22,244 nucleotides of DNA from Octopus sinensis (lineage: Eukaryota): the NCBI RefSeq assembly GCF_006345805.1, contig NW_021836966.1, forward strand, positions 1-22,244, written 5' to 3'. The notes beneath the pieces were generated by a model, which made no database searches, had not been told where the DNA came from, and worked only from the letters and a program-made list of their open reading frames with translations. Positions 754-19,307 of this stretch are shown here, piece after piece. Position numbers and translations under genes: made by a program. Position 1 is the first letter of the stretch; each line of letters begins with the position of its first letter.

Positions 754-1303
754 GAGTGAGAGAGCACTGCATGCCATCAAAGTGACACTGGGGTAAAATA
801 TACAAAGCCCAGTATATCCATCATGACTAACTGTCTGATAAGGGTACACTAGGCACATGCATCACAACCATATGTGCACGACATGGTGATCTCATAACAA
901 GATAAACAGCACATGACCTTGCAGGTAGGGCCCAATTAGAATTTTTTTCTGGTCGAGTAGCCCATCTCACTCAAAAGGTCCCTGAATGAGGGTTGTTTAA
1001 GGATGTTGAATAAAACACCCATGTTTCCAGAAGTGAATTATTCAAACCCCAAATAATCCCTCTCAACACATGGCTATGATGTTCCCCACTACTTCTGCTC
1101 ATGATCAGAGATGCACATATCGTCAGCCACTAAGGGACATGCTCAACTGGTTACGGTCAAACACTGACAAGCAATCTGTGGTATTGAGCAGAATATTTGC
1201 TGTAGCCCATCTTTTATACCAGACACAACAATGTACATGATAACACTTCCAATCAGTTAATATCAGAAGCCATGAAAGCCACTGTCTGGTACTGCATCAG
1301 GGC

Positions 1304-1306
<3 letters not shown>
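754..1306 (-). mobile_element. ~555 bp unclassified interspersed repeat embedded in (ATT)n, copy 1
   Basis: Reverse-complement match along its length to 3433-3988 and 17362-17863; flanked by (ATT)n on both sides. Strand assignment is inferred from which end is truncated in copy 3. Confidence 0.85.
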
Positions 1307-1364
<58 letters not shown>

Positions 1365-1390
1365 TATTATTATTATTTTATTATTATTAT
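1307..1390. repeat. (ATT)n microsatellite
   Basis: Directly visible. Confidence 0.95.
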
Positions 1391-1645
1391 TCATCATCGT
1401 TTAACGTCCGCTTTCGATGCTAGCATGGGTTGGACGGTTCAACTGGGGTCTGGAAAGCCCGAAGGCTGCACTAGGCCAGTCAGATCTGGCAGTGTTTCTA
1501 CAGCTGGATGCCCTTCGTAACACCAACCACTCCGTGAGTGTAGTGGGTGCTTTTTATGTGCCACCGACACAGGCGCCAGACGAGGCTGGCACGGCACCGA
1601 TCGGATGGTGTTTGTTACGTGCCACCAGCACGGAGGCCAAGTCTT
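1391..1645 (-). mobile_element. Retroposon (SINE/LINE-type) 3' tail ending gcggacgttaaacgatgatga
   Basis: Same terminus as plus-strand fragment 6618-6665 (tagcatggaaagcggacgttaaatgatgatg); (GAT)n tail; internal duplicated gtgccacc unit. Confidence 0.7.
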
Positions 1646-3305
1646 GCATGCGCAGCGGGCTTACTACCTGTAGCCTACGGTACCATGCTATTCATTCTTT
1701 TCAGCTATCTAATACTTTTCTGATTATTCTGGCCGTACCAAGGAAGCAAACCTTTTGTAACAGTTCTACTGGGCACTCTTATTCTGGTTTCCTGTATATT
1801 CCCCTTGATGCCTTCTGTTGGTTCCCAAGGACATAACATTAATTAGCACTATCTTCACCTTCTTCATTTTCCATAGCCAGGCTATTTTGTACTTAAGGGG
1901 GTTATATCTATCTTTTTATCACTTTCTTTTTTGACTATTTGTGAGTCAAAGAGGCATGCAACATCAACTATTTAGCATATGTGATGCACCTTGTCCATCA
2001 TCACTAGGTCCGGTCTCCACTCTCTGTGGTTTGTGCTCATACCACATCTTGTCTCTCTCTAGCTTGCACTTTTTGCACAGTTTCCAATGTAGCTAACTTT
2101 CACTACCTGATCATGTCACCACAACTTGTAGTAGTTTTGAGCAAATCTAGGGCATTCACACATGATAAGGGCAATGGTTTCATCTACTCTATTGCAGATG
2201 CAGCACAGCAGAGACACTTGCTCATTCCTAAAGTTGACCCTTCAGTTCATGGTCAACGCTTGGTCTTACACTGCCAGTATAGTGCTCTCCAGTCTCTTTT
2301 TTTAATGTTCCTTTCATCAGCCAATCCCACCTATTTTTACCAGCAATTTCTGTTGTGGCTACATGGAATTGATTGTGTACTCCCTTCTTGCGTAATTATT
2401 CTTCCTGCCCTTTTTGTACTTCTTCCTTTGTTTTCCCCTTTTTTCTCTGCTCTCAATACTCCCTCATTCCTAACTGTCATAAGCTAGGTTTCCTTACTTT
2501 GGACTAGGTATCCCATTAAACTCTCGAGTTCGATACGCATGCAATCTTCCACAATTATCAGTCCTTTTCCTCCATTTGCTCTCTTCATGTATTGTTGATC
2601 AGTGTCTGCACGTGGATAATGGGCTCCATGCATCGTCAGGAGCTTTCTTGACTACCTGTCCATCTCCTTTAGCTCCTTCTCTGTCCTCTTCAGCATTCCA
2701 GCGTCAAACCAAATTACTGCGACTGCGCGTGAGTTTATCGCTGAAATTATGTTTCTTACACTCACCTTTCAAGCCAATATTTTTCTCACTCGCCGCAGGT
2801 AATCTCTTTTTTTGTCTTTTCCTTCATGACGTGGTGTTTTATTCCATCTGCCTCAAGTATTCCCAGGCATTTATAGCTGGATTGAGGTTGAATTGCCTTC
2901 ATCATTTCACCACTTAGCAACCCTAAGCCTTCTGTCTTGGCAAGCTTTCCTCGTCTCATCACCATCGTAGCATATTTTAAGAGTCCGAAATCCATTTTAA
3001 TATAATTGGAGAAAATCTGCATAGACTGGACTAGGCAGTTCAGTTCTGCCTCACTTTTTAGGAATAGCTTCAAGTTGTCCATGAATAGCAAGTGGTTCAG
3101 TTTTGCCTTACCTCTTCCCAAATCATACTCCAAATTTGTTATCTGTAGCATTTCACTCAAGGGGATCATTCCCAGCACGAAGATCAGTGGGGGAGACACT
3201 GTCCCCCTGGAAGATTCTTCTCTTGATTTTCACCTCTCCTAATACTTGATTCCTTGCTGTCAATTCCATCCTATAGCACTTTAGGCTATTCCATATATGG
3301 CTCCT
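1646..3305 (-). mobile_element. Decayed, 5'-truncated RLE-type non-LTR retrotransposon (R4/Dong-like)
   Basis: Manual translation: RT motifs IFQGDSVSP and LNHLLFMDNLKLF, YLRRVRK..AINSRAV..RKLLTMHG..GGKGL, Zn-knuckle-like CCICNRVDETIALIMCEC (~2140-2205), RPDLV..IVDVAC nuclease motif (~1940-2016), C-terminus LLQKVCFLGTARIIRKVLDS* (stop 1701-1703). Confidence 0.9.
1701..3290 (-). pseudogene. Reverse transcriptase / restriction-like endonuclease ORF remnant
   Basis: Multiple in-frame stops and frameshifts; catalytic FMDD reads FMDN; tracked ORF 2786..3199 is its largest open piece. Confidence 0.9.
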
Positions 3306-3421
3306 TGCTGCATTATGAAGTAATATAATAATGATGATGATGATGATGACGATGACAACAACGATGACGACAATGATGATTGATGATAATGATGATGTTT
3401 ATAATAATAATAATAATAATA
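3306..3421. repeat. Compound (ATA)/(ATG)/(GAC) trinucleotide microsatellite
   Basis: Directly visible. Confidence 0.9.
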
Positions 3422-3432
3422 AGGCAATGGCT

Positions 3433-3988
3433 AATGCCCTGATGCAGTACCAGACAGTGGTTCTCATGGCTTCTGATCTTAACTGATTGGAAGTGTTATC
3501 ATGTACATTGTTTTGTCTTGGTATAAAAGATGGGCTACAACAAATATTCTGCTCAATACCATAGATTTGCTAGTCAGTTGTTTGACCGTAACCAGTTGAG
3601 CATGTCCCTTAGTGGCTGACGATATGTGCATCTCTGATCACGAGCAGAAGTAGTGGGGGAGCATCATAGCCATGTTTTGAGAGGGATTCTTTGGGGTTTG
3701 AATAATTCACCTCTGGAAACATGGGTGGTTCTTTCAACATCCTTAAACAACCCTTATTCAGGGACCGCTTGAGCGGGATGGCTACTCAACCTGAAGAAAA
3801 TTCTAACTGGGCCCCACCTGCAAGGTCATGTGCTGTTTATCTTGATATGAGATCACCATGTCGCGCACATATGGTTGTGATGCATGTGCCTGGTGTGCCC
3901 TTATCAGACGGGTAGTCATGATGGGTATATTGGTCTTCGTATATTTTACCCCAGTGTCACTTTGATGGCATGAACTGCTCTCTCACTC
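3433..3988 (+). mobile_element. ~555 bp (AAT)n-embedded repeat, copy 2
   Basis: aatgccctgatgcagtacc...ctctctcactc followed by (AAT)n; matches 754-1306 (rc). Confidence 0.85.
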
Positions 3989-4194
3989 AATAATAATAAT
4001 AACAATAGTAATCAGGAGAAGCCATGGGGGAGCCTGAAGAGAATACTGTAACAAGACCAACCATGGGGCGGGGTGCAGGTGAGGGAGAAGGGTTGTGCTG
4101 ATGAGAATGGTAAAAATAATGGTTGGATGAAAGAATTTTGATAATCTGTATAGACATGAATGGGACTTTTCAAATATAGCTAACCTTGTTGTAA

Positions 4195-4440: not shown

Positions 4441-4520
4441 TGTATGTTTAATATTTTCTCTCTAACTGTGTATTTTTCGTTAAACAACTATTGTTACATG
4501 GATGTAAACAAACCATCATT

Positions 4521-4643
4521 TACATTATTTACATTCGATGGATATTTGTCCTCATCTTGTTTGTTATTAACACAATGTTTTGGCTGTTATACCCTCCAGC
4601 CTTCATCAGGTGTCTTGGGGAAATTTTGAACCTGGGTTCTCAT

Positions 4644-4708
<65 letters not shown>

Positions 4709-4724
4709 TTGTTGTTGTTGTTGC

Positions 4725-4767
<43 letters not shown>

Positions 4768-4884
4768 AATACTACTACTACTATTATCATTATTATTACT
4801 ATTATTATTCTGGTCACTGCTTGAAATTGAACTCAGAATCTGGGGTTAGTAGCCTGTACTCTTACACCATATTCCATGCAGTGA

Positions 4885-4938
<54 letters not shown>

Positions 4939-5117
4939 TAATAACATCAAAAAATACCTTAGGAATGAGAACCCACGTTCAAAATTTTCGCAAGACACCT
5001 GAAGAAGGCTGGAGGGTATATCAGCCGAAACATTGTGTTAACAACAAACAAGATGAGGACAAATATCCGTCGAATGTAAATAATGTACATAATTCCTCAT
5101 CTCTTAAATATAGAACT
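4521..5117. mobile_element. Palindromic element, locus 1: Penelope-like tail(-) / triplet microsatellite / tRNA-like heads / (AAT)n / Penelope-like tail(+)
   Basis: 4521-4647 is the reverse complement (with substitutions) of ~4961-5087; centre 4810-4888 holds inverted tRNA-like head remnants; hammerhead-like cores at 4569-4614(-) and 4994-5039(+). Confidence 0.8.
4994..5039 (+). ncRNA. Minimal type I hammerhead ribozyme-like motif (family 1), partly decayed
   Basis: gacac CTGAAGA a ggctg-gagggtatat-cagcc GAAA catt gtgtt: core boxes, stem II and stem I (gacac/gtgtt) present; stem III reads catt instead of cgtt (CpG decay). Confidence 0.6.
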
Positions 5118-5325: not shown

Positions 5326-6239
5326 CTGTGCTAGTCTGATAGATGAATTACTTTAAAATGAAAAGTTAATATTTAATTTAAACAGAACAGTTTATAAGAA
5401 TTCTCTACTAACTCTGAGGAATATTCATGAAATGAAATACAATTCTTTTGTTGGGTTTTCAAATTAATTTACGACAGTAAAACTTCCACCAAAAATGTCC
5501 TGGTGTCAATTGTTGTTTTAGCTGTGAGGCTGAAGTAATCTAGTAGAAAATGACTTATCCACAGAGACAAGGGCTAGGATGGAGCTGAATTCAACATGTC
5601 TTGGTAACAAGGTATATCGCTTAAGAATCCATGTTACATGATAAAATTATGTAAAGGAAGTTGAAGAGTACTTCATTGTACGGACTTGTTTCTTTGGCTC
5701 TTGTAAAAACATTCCAAATAAAACCTTTATAAAATATCTACTAGGAGAGTCAAGACTATTGAAAAGGTTGCAAGACGCAACAAGAATTTTACAAAAATGA
5801 AAAAAAAACAAGTGTAAATTTTACCGGTGAGTGTGTTAAATTATAAGGCACAAAAAGCAAATGTCTCTCCACAGACACAACAGAATATGCTTCAACACAT
5901 GAACTCAAATAAAAGAATCTTGCAAACCAAATCCAAAAACAAAATAAGAAAAATAAATACAATCAAGAAATTACCAAGCAATCTTTGTAATTTATGTTTG
6001 TATTCTTCCTGTTGGAGATATTTCTTCTGCATTTACTCTGTATATTATAACCAGTAATACTTCTAAATTTGATAGAACTGCATCACTTTACTGAAAGTGT
6101 ATTGAATGATGATAATCTACAAGGAACACTAACTTCACCAGAAGCAGTCATATATCTAACTGCCTGTATGAGATATACTAAAATATCTAATATCAAGTTT
6201 GTCTTTCCCACCTTTTGTGCCAGCCAGGAATCCATTCTT

Positions 6240-6469
6240 ATTTCCTTATTGCCCACAAGGGGCTACACACAGAGTGGACAAACAAGGACAGACAAATGGA
6301 TTAAGTCAATTATATCGACCCTAGTGAGTAACTGGTACTTATTTAATCGAGTCCGAAAGGATGAAAGGCAAAGTCGATCTCGGCGGAATTTGAACTCAGA
6401 ACATAGTGGCGGACGAAATACTGCTAAGCATTTCACCCGGTGTGCTAAAGTTTCTGCCAGCTCGCCGCC
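6240..6469 (-). mobile_element. tRNA-derived SINE family B, near full length
   Basis: Head ggcggcgagctggcagaa, B-box gagttcaaattcc, body gactttgcctttcatcctttcgg; matches 7257-7418 and 19079-19307. Confidence 0.85.
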
Positions 6470-7189: not shown

Positions 7190-7256
7190 TCATCATCATA
7201 TATATATGTGTGTGTGCATGTGTGTGTGTTGTGTGTGTGTGTGTGTATATGTGTGT
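7190..7256. repeat. (CAT)/(TA)/(GT) microsatellite
   Basis: Directly visible. Confidence 0.9.
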
Positions 7257-7418
7257 ATGTTCTGAGTTCAAATTCCGCCGAGGTCGACTTTACCTTTCAT
7301 CCTTTCGGGGTCGATAAATAAAGTACCAGTTTCTCACTGGGGTCAATGTAATTGACTTACTCCCTTTGTCTGTCCTTGTTTGTCCCCTCTATGTTTAGCC
7401 CCTTGTGGGCAGTAAAGA
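7257..7418 (+). mobile_element. SINE family B, 5'-truncated
   Basis: atgttctgagttcaaattccgccgaggtcgac...ccccttgtgggcagtaaag matches 6240-6469 rc. Confidence 0.85.
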
Positions 7419-8065
7419 TATATATATATATGTATGTATATATATATATATATATACCCAAAAGCTCTGAAGAACTTAAAGGAGTATGCTCCACTGGATG
7501 TGTAAGGTTAATGTGCATGAGTGAGGGAGCACAAATGAATCGAAAGAAAACTGGGTATAAATGAAAGGTATCAGACAGGTATAGTGTGCAACGGAAGTGA
7601 CTAGCTTGATATCAACACCTGATATATATGGATAGCCGGTTCAAGAAATGCAACTTATACAGGTACCATCGAACTTCATATTATGTGTATTTGTATCTGT
7701 CAATAACTTATGGCATGTGTTCAAGCATTTCAGCTTACACCCTAAACCCGTCCTTTCATAGGACTACGGGGGGTATATTTTCATTAGCTTTCTGAGACAT
7801 TCTTTATTTCAAGGTGTTATAATAAAGAAGAAGCCTTGTTCCTTTGTTTCATTCCTGGTCCATTTATACACCAGCTACTCCTCAGCCACTGTCAACACAA
7901 TTGCTATGAATTGTATGGTTAAACACGCTTATCTGCTTTTGTTCAACAGTGGCTGTTGAGGTGAATTAGTCACTGGAAACATCTAGCTATCCTTTAAGGT
8001 AACATATGGCAAATATCCTTTATTTTCTTTATGTGGTTTATCTGCGGTCCGCTATTTGAGGTCTG

Positions 8066-10710: not shown

Positions 10711-11091
10711 GCACTCATACATATAACAGGTTTTATTCAGTTTCCGTCTGCCAGATTCACTTACAAGGCTTTGGTCGATCCGAAGTTATAAAAGAAGACA
10801 CTTGCCTAAGATATCACTTTGTGGAACTGAACCTGAATCCTTGAACTTGGAAAGCAATCTTCTTACCAAACAGGTCTGTGCTAGTTTCTATTTTATTTTT
10901 TTTTCCACTGGACATCTTGAGGTTGGACGGAAGTCTTTCTATGTGATAAGTTTTCTTCCCTTTGCCTCTTAACATATTATCCCATACATTTTCGTTCAAT
11001 GATGTCCAGTAAATATATGTTTGAATGAAAATATATATTCACTGTATTCTGAGGTATCTGTCACTTATTTCTAACCCGAAATACTTTATAT

Positions 11092-11246
11092 ATTTACTTT
11101 CAACTGATATTTGTCCTCATCTTGTTTGTTGTTAGCACAACGTTTCGGCTGATATACCCTCCAGCCTTCTTGAGGTGTCTTGGGGAAATTTTGAACCTGG
11201 GTTCTCATTCCTAAGGTATTTTTCAATGTTATTGTTGTTATTATTA

Positions 11247-11288
<42 letters not shown>

Positions 11289-11400
11289 ATTATTATTATT
11301 ATTGTTATTGTTCAGGTCATTGTTTGGAATCGAACTCATTGGAATAACAACAACAATAACAACAACAACAACAACAACACACAACAACAACAACAACAAC

Positions 11401-11462
<62 letters not shown>

Positions 11463-11641
11463 AATAATAACATCGAAAAATACCTTAGGAATGAGAACCC
11501 AGGTTCAAAATTTTCGCAAGACACCTGAAGAAGGCTGGAGGGTATATCAGCCGAAATGTGTTAACAACAAACAAAGATGAGGACAAATATCTATTGAATG
11601 CAAATTATGTACATAATTCCTCATCTCTTAAATATAGAACT
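11092..11641. mobile_element. Palindromic element, locus 2 (same architecture as 4521-5117)
   Basis: Inverted tails ~11092-11230 and ~11470-11641; head remnant 11313-11337; (ATT)n and (AAC)n spacers; hammerhead-like cores 11134-11179(-) and 11520-11562(+). Confidence 0.8.
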
Positions 11642-12070: not shown

Positions 12071-12387
12071 GGGTAAAGATTAGAGTTAGGTTTTAAGGGT
12101 AGTGTTAGGGTTGGGATTTAGGGGTAGTGTTAGTGATAATGGTTTAGAGTTAAGGTTTAGTTTTAAGGTAAAGATTTAGGGTTAGAGTTAGGGAATAAGA
12201 TTAGAGCTAGGGTTTAGGGTTAGACTTTAGGGTTATAGTTAGAGGTTAGGGTTAGAGTTGGGGTTAAGGTTAGGGTTTAGAGTTAGGGTGGATTTAAGGT
12301 TAGTGTTAGAGTTTAGGTTTAGGTTTAGGGATAGGGTTATAGTTTAGGATTAGGATTAGGGTTAGGGTGAAGGTTGAGTTAGGGATA
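12071..12387 (+). repeat. Degenerate telomere-like (TTAGGG)n interstitial tract
   Basis: ttaggg, ttagag, tttagg, ttaagg variants in ~6-nt periodicity. Confidence 0.8.
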
Positions 12388-12445
12388 GACTGCATGTGTA
12401 AATGTATGCTAAAGTTTAAATGGCTACAGTTTGGGTTAGAGTTAG

Positions 12446-12712
12446 AAGAGGAAGAGGAGGAAGAAGAGAAGGTGAAGAAGGAAGAGAAGGAGGAGAATGA
12501 GAAAGAGGAAGAGAAGGATGAAGAGAAAGAGGGGAGAAGGAGAAGAAGAAATAGGAGGAAGTGATGAAGGACAAAGAGAAAGAGAGGAGGGAGGATTGGA
12601 AAAAATGAAGGAGGAGGAAGAGACAGAAAGAAGAAGGATGAGAGATAGAGGAGGTGGAGGTGGAGGAGACATTGAGGAGAAGAAGGACGAGAAGGAAGAT
12701 AAGGGTGTTAGG
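12446..12712. repeat. GA-rich (GAA/GAG) low-complexity tract
   Basis: Nearly pure purine on the + strand. Confidence 0.9.
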
Positions 12713-13758: not shown

Positions 13759-14116
13759 CCTTTGTATGTTTCACCCGCAATTTTACACGCATTTCAAAAA
13801 CCGCAAGTTTCATGCATTGCGTGCGTATGTAGTGCGTGCGCGCACGTTTTTATTAACACACATACGTACACACACACACATATATATATATACACACATA
13901 AACATATTTCCTTCGAAACGCGGAGTAGATAAAACAGGGGACAACTGAAGAAGGGGAATATTCTTTATGTTGTATGTCTTGTTTTTCTGAGTTTTTTTCG
14001 TTGTTCGAAAAAAAGTTCGTTTTCTGTGTTTTTGTTTTCGTTTCTCATTGTATTTAACGTTTGTTTTTTTTATGTCCTGCACCCATATATGTAAGTATAT
14101 ATGCATATATTTATAT

Positions 14117-14246
<130 letters not shown>

Positions 14247-14366
14247 TCACAATCAAGGAACGGCCATAATAGGCCATTCACCCACTAGAAATAACAGCCA
14301 AAAGCTTAACCGCAAAATAACATCAATCCGTAAACCAGGAGAAAATTAAAAAACATTTACCCTGTA

Positions 14367-14473
14367 ATTTCTTATACGATGCACCGTTTCATCTACTGTT
14401 TAATGGTAAACTAACCTGATTAAATTAAATCAAGCCAATCTACCATAGGCCCTTAGATTCATCAGTAAGAAAT
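14367..14473 (-). ncRNA. Type I hammerhead ribozyme motif, left-arm mirror copy
   Basis: Exact reverse complement of 14710-14816. Confidence 0.8.
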
Positions 14474-14709
14474 AGCCAAGTCGGAACAGATATTTTTCAC
14501 GAGGCATTCCCGTCCCTGCCTCGGCAATATCTGACCTAAAATTTTCAAATCATCGAATTTTCTGGTTAGTTCCGTAATGGAATCGGCGGCTTATATTTAT
14601 TTGCTGCCGATAAATTTGGCGCGAGTGCGATGATTTGAAAATTTTAGGTCAGATATTGCCGAGGCAGGGACGGGAATGCCTCGTGAAAAATATCTGTTCC
14701 GACTTGGCT

Positions 14710-14816
14710 ATTTCTTACTGATGAATCTAAGGGCCTATGGTAGATTGGCTTGATTTAATTTAATCAGGTTAGTTTACCATTAAACAGTAGATGAAACGGT
14801 GCATCGTATAAGAAAT
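14710..14816 (+). ncRNA. Type I hammerhead ribozyme motif with extended stem II
   Basis: Stem I atttctta/taagaaat (8 bp); CTGATGA 14718-14724; stem II atcta/tagat plus 19-bp distal helix; GAAA 14793-14796; stem III acg/cgt; GTA triplet 14806-14808. Confidence 0.8.
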
Positions 14817-14991
14817 TACAGGGTAAATGTTTTTTAATTTTCTCCTGGTTTACGGAATTGATGTTATTTTGCGGTTAAAGCTTTTGGCTGTTATTTCTAG
14901 TGGGTGAATGGCCTATTATGGCCGTTCCTTGATTGTGATGTTGAACTTAAAAATGGTCTATGACTATTTAATTTTTTCCCACTAGGCCGCT

Positions 14992-15027
14992 GGTGGCAAA
15001 AAAATTCTACAAAATTTTTCTGCCACC
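14992..15027. other. 15-bp stem hairpin (one mismatch, 6-nt loop)
   Basis: ggtggcaaaaaaatt-ctacaa-aatttttctgccacc. Confidence 0.7.
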
Positions 15028-15169
15028 CTATATTGATTAATAAATATATATATATATATATATATAAATAATATATAAATATATGCATATATACTTATAT
15101 ATATTATATTGTGTGAAATTTGATTTAGTATTTCTAAATTGAACTTTTTCCCTGTAAGTTAGGATTAAT

Positions 15170-16907: not shown

Positions 16908-17055
16908 GTACATTATTTACATTATTTACATTCGACGGATGTTTGTCCTCATCTTGTTTGTTGTTAACATGTTTCGGCTGATATACCCTCCAGCCTTCAT
17001 CAGGCGTCTTTGGCAAATTTCGAACCTGGGTTCTCATTCTTAAGGCATTCTTCGT

Positions 17056-17111
<56 letters not shown>

Positions 17112-17294
17112 TTATTATTATTCAGGTCACTGCTTGGAATCGAACTCGGGATCTTGGGGTTAGCCCGAGCTCTTATGTCCGTGGGCATATCGCGTAGTGG
17201 TTAAGTGGCATATGCCCATAGGCATATGGCGTAGCGGTTAAGAGCGCGGGCTACTAACCACAGGATTCCGAGTTTGATTCCAAGCTGTGACCTG

Positions 17295-17335
<41 letters not shown>

Positions 17336-18035
17336 CGATAATAATAATAATAATAATAATACTGATCTTAACTGATTGGAAGTGTCATCATGTACATTGT
17401 TTTGTCTTGGTATAAAAGATGGGCTACAGCAAATATTCTGCTCAATTACCACAGATTTGCTTGTCAGTTGTTTGACCTTAACCAGTTGAGCATGTCCCTT
17501 AGTGGCTGACGATATGTGCATCTCTGATCACGAGCAGAAGTAGTGGGGGGAGCATCATAGCCATGTGTTGAGAGGGATTCTTTGGGGTTTGAATAATTCA
17601 CCTCTGGAAATGGGTGGTTCTTTCAACATCCTTAAAACAACCCTTATTCAGGGCCCGTTTGAGCAGGATGGGCTACTCGACCCAAAAAAAATTCTAACTG
17701 GGCCCCACCTGCAAGGTCATGTGCTGTTTATCTTGATACGAGATCACATGTCGCGCACATATGGTTGTGATGCATGTGCCTGGTGTGTAGTCATGAGGGT
17801 ATGCTGGGCTTCGTATATTTTTACCCCAGTGTCACTTTGATGGCATGCACTGATCTCTCACTCAATATAATAATATAATAATAATAATAATAATAATAAT
17901 ATAATAATAATATAATAACAACAACATCGAAAAAAACCTTAGGAATGAGAACCCAGGTTCAAAATTTCCCCAAGACACCTGAAGAAGGCTGGAGGATATA
18001 TCAGCCGAAACATTGTGTTAACAACAAACAAGATG
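16908..18035. mobile_element. Palindromic element, locus 3, most complete centre; interrupted by the 555-bp repeat
   Basis: Inverted tails ~16908-17050 and ~17922-18035; head-to-head tRNA-like heads 17123-17294 (A-box tggcgtagcgg 17227-17237; B-box gagttcgattcc intact on the minus copy); hammerhead-like cores 16966-17008(-) and 17974-18019(+). Confidence 0.8.
17362..17863 (+). mobile_element. (AAT)n-embedded repeat, copy 3, truncated at one end
   Basis: Matches 3433-3988 minus the first ~40 nt; (AAT)n on both sides. Confidence 0.85.
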
Positions 18036-18446: not shown

Positions 18447-18601
18447 AATCAGTTAATTATGATTTTATTCAACATATTCCTCTCTCATATTCACACAGTT
18501 ATTGCAGTTATTTCTAAGACCTGTAAAAGAATCGGAAGGTTGGGCCTCCAAACAGGTCATTCGCGAATCTCTTGAAGTCAGGAACTTTCAGCAAGCCCTT
18601 G
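18447..18601 (-). mobile_element. Partial copy of the mariner MITE at 441-650
   Basis: Aligns with ~485-650; ends ggaactttcagcaagcccttg-TA. Confidence 0.75.
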
Positions 18602-18686: not shown

Positions 18687-18865
18687 ATACAGAGGAGGAT
18701 CAGTTGATTATGATTTTATTCAAAAATATTCCCCTCTCAAGTTCACACATTTAATGCAGTGGTCCTTCAGTTTTTCTAAGTCTTGCAAAAGAACTCGGAA
18801 GGTTGGACTTCCAATTAGGCCTTACACGATAACCTTGAAGCCAAGAATTTCCCAGCACACCCTCG
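18687..18865 (-). mobile_element. Second partial copy of the mariner MITE
   Basis: Aligns with ~475-650; ends cagcacaccctcg-TA. Confidence 0.75.
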
Positions 18866-19078
18866 TATGTTATAAGCATTATGGTTAAAGATATACCTTT
18901 TTTTTTTTATCCTCCTTCTAGCCATTCGGAGGTCTTGAAAGAACTCGTGGATATTCCTTTATCCCTTGGCTAAACAATAAACACTCCCATAGACATGCAT
19001 GCACGCACACACAAACACACATGTATAATTCTTAACAGCCTTTCTTTCGATTCTTTTATATCCTGAGTTTAAATACCT

Positions 19079-19307
19079 ATTTCTTTACTACCCACAAGGC
19101 GCTAAACACAGAGGGGACAAACAAGGACAGACACACGGATTAAGTCGATTATATCGACCCCAGTGCGTAACTGGTACTTATTTAATCGACCCCGAAAGGA
19201 TGAAAGGCAAAGTCGACCTAGGCGGAATTAGAACTCAGAACGTAACGGCAGACGAAATACCGCTAAGCATTTCGCCCGGCGTGTTAACGTTTCTGCCAGC
19301 TCGCCGC
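19079..19307 (-). mobile_element. SINE family B, near full length
   Basis: High similarity to 6240-6469. Confidence 0.85.

Follow-up and report, generated by a model that had tools for sequence, protein, structure and literature searches.

A complete type I hammerhead motif is found in each arm of a large palindrome in the genome of Octopus sinensis, and it is probably a genuine hammerhead-derived motif carried by a Penelope-like or retrozyme-like element that is present as a head-to-head pair. The motif is most likely an odd variant of a known ribozyme class and not a new kind of thing. The DNA that was analysed, hereafter the window, is a stretch of 22,244 nucleotides of contig NW_021836966.1 (assembly GCF_006345805.1). 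A first-pass annotation made from the letters of this stretch had placed a complete type I hammerhead in both palindrome arms. Direct reading and a motif script agree with its placing of every part of the hammerhead, base for base: helices II and III are closed, and helix I is open (Table 1).

Table 1. Coordinates, within the window, of the hammerhead motif, the palindrome that contains it and the second hammerhead family
Feature	Position	Strand	Sequence or pairing	Basis or remark
Type I hammerhead motif, right arm	14710-14816	+		direct reading, script scan
Type I hammerhead motif, left arm (identical)	14367-14473	-		script scan; arms identical
Helix I	14710-14717 with 14809-14816	+	ATTTCTTA with TAAGAAAT	8 Watson-Crick pairs
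Core, 5' part	14718-14724	+	CTGATGA (C3 U4 G5 A6 U7 G8 A9)	direct reading
Core, 3' part	14793-14795	+	GAA (G12 A13 A14)	direct reading
Proximal helix II, 5 bp	14725-14729 with 14788-14792	+	ATCTA with TAGAT	direct reading
Helix II internal loop, 7x7	14730-14736 opposite 14781-14787	+	AGGGCCT opposite TAAACAG	
Distal helix, uninterrupted, 19 bp	14737-14755 with 14762-14780	+	14 Watson-Crick and 5 G-U pairs	
Loop of distal helix, 6 nt	14756-14761	+	TAATTT	
Whole extended helix II	14725-14792	+		direct reading and folding
Helix III hairpin	14796-14807	+	ACGGUGCAUCGU; loop UGCA	A15.1-U16.1, C-G, G-C, G-U
Predicted cleavage site	14808..14809	+	triplet GUA, 14806-14808	cut before U14809; from hammerhead numbering
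Possible helix I extension	14703-14706 with 14819-14822	+	CUUG with CAGG	across a 3x2 internal loop; minimum-energy fold
Left arm	14246-14555	-		ribozyme sense reads outward from centre
Right arm	14628-14937	+		ribozyme sense reads outward from centre
Non-palindromic centre, 72 nt	14556-14627	none		unique within the window
Outer left arm	14085-14245	-		about 30 nt that also occur on the right, followed by a long (TA)n array
Outer right arm	14938-15104	+		first some 100 nt without counterpart on the left, next a short (TA)n array, lastly the shared 30 nt or so
Second-family locus 1	about 4515-5093	both	C3 at +4999 and -4609	head-to-head pair
Second-family locus 2	about 11079-11574	both	C3 at +11525 and about -11171	head-to-head pair
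Second-family locus 3	about 16911-18035	both	C3 at +17979 and -17003	head-to-head pair

Core, extended helix II and self-complementary helix III

All the bases that define a hammerhead core (C3-U4-G5-A6-N7-G8-A9 and G12-A13-A14) are present, and three helices surround them: helix I with 8 bp, helix II with 5 bp (plus a further 19 bp) and helix III with 3-4 bp. The 15.1-16.1 pair is formed by A14796 and U14807, and position 17 is A14808, i.e., an H that is not G. Hammerhead numbering thus bears out the GUA site of the first-pass annotation and its predicted cut, as regards position only. In the left-arm copy, on the minus strand, C3 falls at 14465 and H17 at 14375, and the cut is predicted between 14375 and 14374. 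An alternative register, in which one base after A9 stays unpaired as it does in min-HHRs, was considered and rejected; it would leave an unpaired U before G12. A second TAGAT, which had been pointed out as a possible competitor for the pairing of proximal helix II, does occur at 14741-14745.

One departure from consensus had been overlooked: the first pair of helix II, 10.1-11.1, is A14725-U14792 instead of G-C. The G10.1-C11.1 pair is the most conserved stem pair of hammerheads after 15.1-16.1 (PMC3088659, PMC4209133). The preference is strong, yet it is not absolute, and a natural hammerhead variant with U-U is active.

Helix II is unusually long, as had been claimed. Type I hammerheads usually have 4-5 bp in this helix and Penelope-type min-HHRs 7-8 bp, both far fewer than here. 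Viral hammerheads, for their part, have 0-8 bp in this helix (bioRxiv 10.1101/2024.05.16.594327, also for the type I range). A search of the open-access literature brought up no type I hammerhead from animals whose helix II is as large or contains an internal loop. Both helix I and helix II appear in the minimum-energy fold, whether 131 nt or the 385-nt arm is folded. Beyond the 3x2 internal loop, this fold suggests a possible extension of helix I. Internal loops are thus located 8 bp out on helix I (3x2) and 5 bp out on helix II (7x7). A tertiary contact between the two helices would be geometrically conceivable from this model, and no known loop-loop motif was recognised in them.

The two strands of the motif are not equivalent. 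Read on the ribozyme strand, the 19-bp helix departs from Watson-Crick pairing five times, always with G-U, which confirms the strand preference proposed for these pairs. The motif folds with -38.9 kcal/mol (z = -4.9) in the sense orientation versus -20.7 kcal/mol (z = -2.2) in antisense, and helix II by itself with -27.1 versus -11.4 kcal/mol. Under neutral decay of a DNA hairpin, the probability that five mismatches out of five wobble on one given strand is estimated at p ~0.001-0.004, assuming that transitions make up half to two-thirds of substitutions.

Helix III has a further property. Its 12-mer ACGGTGCATCGT (14796-14807), described from the outset as near-palindromic, is complementary to itself throughout once G-U pairs are counted. 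The ACGGUGCAUCGU hairpin is worth only -0.2 kcal/mol, compared with -17.5 kcal/mol for the homoduplex of the 12-mer, and two copies are able to join through an intermolecular helix III of 12 bp. A homodimer of the full motif is predicted to reach -83.3 kcal/mol, versus twice -34.9 kcal/mol for the monomers, and to adopt the fold of a classical double hammerhead. Metazoan type I and Penelope-type hammerheads are known for a short helix III with a palindromic loop and for cleavage as a dimer (PMC4209133, PMC7229834, PMC6155905). Because neither the self-complementary helix III nor the G-U bias was among the search criteria, both constitute an independent fit to animal hammerheads. The G-U strand bias, the self-complementary helix III and the outward-reading min-HHRs in the neighbourhood (see below) all point to an RNA made from this strand.

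Four head-to-head hammerhead loci in one window

The inverted structure spans approximately 14085-15104, roughly 1 kb, and its two copies stand head-to-head. The arms are 100% complementary over 14327-14555 and 14628-14856, and over 313 nt they differ by no substitution and by two one-base indels. The 72-nt centre would be 5' sequence that only the longer of the two head-to-head copies has. Arrays of (TA)n flank both arms, the left one being much longer than the right one, and the 30 nt or so that lie outside these arrays are also inverted, so that an inverted duplication at the DNA level fits as well as a retroelement insertion. The extra segment present on one side only measures about 100 nt, compared with the 30-40-bp tail described for Penelope-like insertions. 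A small hairpin, GGTGGCAAAAAAATT-CTACAA-AATTTTTCTGCCACC, is found within this right-only segment at 14991-15027.

A read-through transcript of the whole palindrome would form a near-perfect hairpin of about 310 bp (-584.6 kcal/mol), in which the ribozyme is buried. On this folding model, the ribozyme may be silent at the palindrome locus, and the hairpin might instead feed small-RNA or editing pathways. Between 14491 and 14692, on both strands, Rfam returns sub-threshold matches to the plant microRNA families MIR5512 (72.7 bits, threshold 139), MIR5185 and MIR834. Homology to plant microRNAs was rejected for this segment, as the matches are far below threshold, occur on both strands and are generic to long inverted repeats. 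They mirror the inner part of the palindrome, which folds as a long hairpin.

A listing of all CUGANGA sites in the window revealed a second hammerhead family with six copies, whose consensus reads CUGA(A/U)GA-A-GGCUGG...UCAGCC-GAAACGU-U-GUGUU. In its members, A9 is followed by an extra A, 10.1-11.1 is G-C, helix II is GGCUGG/UCAGCC, the short helix I is GACAC/GUGUU and helix III is missing. Their 15.1-16.1 region is a palindromic ACGU, of which the CG is kept in one copy; in the others, it has decayed to CA or was lost by small deletions. In some copies, the core itself has undergone inactivating changes (G5 to C, G12 to A). Judging by published features (PMC4209133), the second family is a Penelope-type min-HHR. 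Apart from the core, the two hammerhead families share no sequence similarity.

The six copies form three head-to-head pairs (Table 1) with microsatellite centres, differing 5' truncation points and ribozymes that read outward. All four hammerhead loci of the window therefore share the same architecture, and the palindrome is best regarded as a property of the element class and not of the long-stemmed ribozyme. The head-to-head arrangement is a recurrent retroelement architecture, which the first-pass annotation had missed. Penelope-like insertions have been described with an inverted, 5'-truncated copy at their 5' end, with hammerheads in their pseudo-LTRs and with a bias for (TA)n microsatellites (PMC8557442). 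Penelope-like elements were recently active in O. vulgaris (PMC13282606), and a squid genome contains 235 Rfam hammerhead matches (PMC6962438).

Two observations concern the units of the second family. At 4940-5110, a stop-free peptide that crosses the repeat (ITSKNTLGMRT...) is 81% identical to UniRef A0A0L8FV75, an uncharacterized protein of Octopus bimaculoides, which agrees with an octopus-like genome and suggests that this annotated protein may be a translated repeat. The 5' part of the unit (17130-17296, 4811-4890) contains, on the hammerhead strand, strings resembling box A and box B, GCGTAGCGGTTAAGAGC ... GAGTTTGATTCC. By eye, these give the impression of a unit that would be a tRNA-derived SINE with a Penelope-type 3' part. 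A tRNA-derived head was rejected, being unsupported by ARAGORN and by Rfam at E<=1.

Other repeats are abundant in the window. Microsatellites are very dense throughout, and include (TA)n, (TAT)n, (CAA)n, (CAG)n, (TAC)n and (GATA)n. At 12071-12447, degenerate TTAGGG-like units (GGTTAGGG, GTTTAGGG, GTTAGAG) recur every 12-19 nt or so; the array is rich in G, has a strong GC skew and, from its sequence, looks like an interstitial, decayed telomere-like repeat. Dispersed repeats with 75-90% identity, some of them inverted, are located at 6234-6468, 7256-7430 and 19070-19307, and at 507-636, 18471-18588 and 18723-18851. A large inverted repeat (740-1306 and 3433-4002), whose arms are 90-95% complementary in pieces of 86-223 nt, encloses about 2 kb. 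This interval contains a reverse transcriptase fragment (2786-3199, minus strand) whose homologues carry Pfam PF00078. A search for a Penelope-like ORF near this fragment, with three frames of 1300-3460 (stops masked) against Pfam, gave no matches.

Searches, chance estimates and alternative explanations

The first-pass annotation had suggested a covariance-model search, and this did not bear the motif out: Rfam gives no significant hammerhead match, either at gathering thresholds or at E<=10. The best model, Hammerhead_3, scores 12.4 bits (E = 5), and its threshold is 48.5. Rfam likewise detects none of the second-family min-HHR copies in the window, so its silence on the long-stemmed motif is weak counter-evidence. 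BLAST within the window recovers no copy of the palindrome other than itself, and the arm has no direct repeat there, its two copies being inverted. An exact-pattern scan of viral contigs for the motif gave 0 matches. A gapped core pattern run against metagenome contigs matched ten times, always in protein-coding DNA and never with hammerhead helices; by eye, seven of the ten belong to a single conserved gene that resembles a Clp ATPase. When ten peptides free of stops, taken from both strands of the arms, were searched against 5.8 billion proteins, nothing was found at E<=1, and exact-protein look-ups of three window ORFs and of octopus protein P0010 returned no record.

These searches bear on the earlier proposal that the motif may be an undescribed variant. 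The completeness of the motif and the length of its helix II hold. No second independent copy was found in the searches, and since the sole two copies are identical, neither conservation nor covariation can be judged from them. A viroid-like or circular-RNA origin was rejected as unsupported, since the two polarities result from the inverted duplication of one sequence. Inside the arms, ORFs do not exceed 42 codons, and neither a reverse transcriptase nor a GIY-YIG ORF was found adjoining the palindrome, the only reverse transcriptase fragment of the window lying 11 kb away. The element can thus be no more than a relative of Penelope-like elements, truncated or non-autonomous.

The probability of finding such a motif by chance was estimated on 40 Mb of simulated Markov-1 sequence with the dinucleotide content of the window. 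A strict scan (CUGANGA, GAAA, A15.1-U16.1, H17 not G, helices I>=4, II>=3 and III>=2) yielded 20 motifs in the 40 Mb. With helices I>=5, II>=4 and III>=3, no motif was found in the same sequence (the real motif has 8, 5 and 4). By extrapolation, chance would produce such a motif at about 1e-5 per 22-kb window, i.e., in the order of once per few-gigabase genome. The strict definition matters, since a laxer scan that drops the 15.1-16.1 pair found 20 motifs in 300 simulated windows, one of which matched the total helix length. Matches to the core plus helix II number 6 in the window, compared with 0.14 expected.

A chance origin of the hammerhead motif is very unlikely. It would make the motif a fortuitous resemblance within an unrelated foldback or MITE-like repeat of a genome rich in inverted repeats, and one could invoke for it the single known locus, the lack of an Rfam match, the non-consensus 10.1-11.1 pair and the outcome of the lax scan. 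The window does contain 1983 inverted-repeat pairs, which make helices cheap. Even if the hairpins are granted, however, neither the 11 core bases nor U16.1, H17 and helix III depend on them, and with helices I>=5, II>=4 and III>=3 the full definition found nothing in 40 Mb. The palindromic helix III and the G-U bias fit animal hammerheads although they were not searched for, and a second, unmistakable hammerhead family shares the same architecture in the window. The long hairpin formed by the palindrome could be what is functional, as an RNA gene giving rise to small RNAs or to an editing substrate, with the hammerhead as a passenger. The extent and stability of the hairpin, mirrored by the plant microRNA matches, are what this proposal builds on. 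It is highly improbable, as those matches are generic and far from threshold and as it leaves the intact ribozyme core and the G-U bias unexplained; such a hairpin would also be compatible with the preferred reading, a head-to-head pair of hammerhead-carrying copies, as a secondary consequence. An assembly artefact, for example a chimeric long read, is scarcely credible. The arms are perfectly identical, and their sole differences in 313 nt are one-base run-length changes typical of long-read errors. Yet the structure is asymmetric (a 72-nt unique centre, about 100 nt on the right only and unequal (TA)n arrays), it is embedded in the 22-kb window with unique flanks on both sides, and even an artefact would leave one real ribozyme-bearing arm.

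The motif might also be the dead relic of a retroelement hammerhead, in which the expansion of helix II and the A-U pair at 10.1-11.1 have abolished useful cleavage, the palindrome having arisen by a recent fold-back duplication of DNA that included flanking sequence. We consider this unlikely, though by no means negligible. The 10.1-11.1 pair is off consensus, and in a hammerhead that depends on tertiary contacts, altering the length of helix II lowered activity. The inverted region runs through the (TA)n arrays into about 30 nt of apparent flank, the absence of substitutions between the arms implies a recent event, and several second-family copies of the window are visibly decayed, in G5, in G12 and through CpG decay in helix III. 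Against this, the remaining core positions are all intact, and the A at 10.1 is, by our own reasoning, still a purine. Furthermore, all five G-U pairs favour the ribozyme strand, which is unexpected under neutral decay of a DNA hairpin, and the differing truncation points of the three other head-to-head loci argue for insertion and not for independent fold-back accidents.

Proposed mechanism, known relatives and implications

The preferred explanation is that the palindrome would be a head-to-head pair of short, non-coding, hammerhead-carrying retroelement copies, either of the Penelope-like (pseudo-LTR) type or of the animal-retrozyme type. One copy would be 72 nt shorter than its partner at the 5' end, the pair would adjoin a (TA)n microsatellite, and each copy would encode a type I hammerhead when read outward from the centre. 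In an arm transcribed alone, helices I and II are expected to fold, while helix III would be too weak to form within a single molecule. Two ribozyme copies could then pair through the self-complementary ACGGUGCAUCGU into a double hammerhead. Cleavage of each RNA behind A14808 would produce a 2',3'-cyclic phosphate and, on U14809, a 5'-OH, as is seen for hammerheads of newt satellites, viroids and the Penelope type. The long helix II would represent a lineage-specific extension, with its internal loop, 5 bp from the core, at the usual place of loop 2. The motif itself, its rarity in simulated sequence, the strand bias, a helix III compatible with dimers and the recurring inverted layout are direct observations, from which the retroelement class, transcription, dimer cleavage and any activity are inferred. 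In a bolder version, the motif would be active and would represent a structural subclass of type I hammerheads, so far undescribed, that occurs in Penelope-derived elements of cephalopods. The internal loop of its long, rod-like helix II would assume the tertiary docking of loop 2, A-U would stand in for G10.1-C11.1, and the divergently transcribed pair would yield identical RNAs that cleave each other as a trans dimer. This stronger claim appears distinctly doubtful.

The closest relatives share several traits with the octopus motif. The hammerheads of animal satellites and non-LTR retrozymes (newt satellite 2, Schistosoma Sm-alpha, mussel, coral and axolotl; PMC7229834, PMC6155905) are likewise of type I, with a consensus core and a GUH site. 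They have a weak helix III with a palindromic loop, which implies cleavage as a dimer, and reside in low-GC, non-coding sequence; helix I is possibly internally looped. However, their helix II is of about 4 bp, with a loop that docks on helix I and with G10.1-C11.1, whereas the octopus motif has 5 bp, a 7x7 loop, 19 bp and an A-U pair. Animal retrozymes are, moreover, direct tandem repeats of 170-400 bp that give rise to circular RNAs, whereas the octopus copies are inverted and only two in number. A transcript therefore carries a single ribozyme and cannot release a monomer. Direct tandem copies being absent, the octopus element is not a retrozyme in the strict sense.

The hammerheads of Penelope-like pseudo-LTRs (Cervera and de la Pena 2014, PMC4209133; Craig et al. 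2021, PMC8557442) resemble the octopus motif in their terminal-repeat-like setting with an inverted, 5'-truncated partner, possibly in their association with (TA)n, in their palindromic helix III positions and in a lengthened helix II. Indeed, the octopus locus displays head-to-head copies, the 72-nt offset and outward ribozymes, as expected of a Penelope-like architecture. In min-HHRs, helix II measures 7-8 bp and helix I 4-5 bp, one additional base stays unpaired after A9, the 10.1-11.1 pair is G-C and helix III is usually missing. The octopus motif lacks the additional base, pairs A with U at 10.1-11.1 and has 8 bp in helix I, a genuine helix III and a helix II that is several-fold longer. 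An ORF with a reverse transcriptase and a GIY-YIG endonuclease is expected of Penelope-like elements, and none adjoins the octopus motif. The hammerheads of the group to which chrysanthemum chlorotic mottle viroid belongs are of type III. The minus-strand hammerhead of this viroid self-cleaves with an 'unusually long helix II' (PMC3705267), so that a long helix II is compatible with activity, although that hammerhead is part of a plant viroid RNA and the octopus motif is a DNA-encoded animal repeat.

If the motif is inactive, it is one more decayed retroelement ribozyme, of little consequence. Either way, it comes with a warning for annotation: Rfam models miss both the long-stemmed motif and the min-HHRs of the window, so that hammerhead counts in cephalopods are probably underestimates. 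If the motif is active, the natural architecture of type I hammerheads would tolerate a helix II of about 30 base-pair equivalents with an internal loop at the usual place of loop 2, and the most conserved stem pair may be A-U. Cephalopods would then join the animals in which non-autonomous, ribozyme-carrying elements of the Penelope type can be studied.
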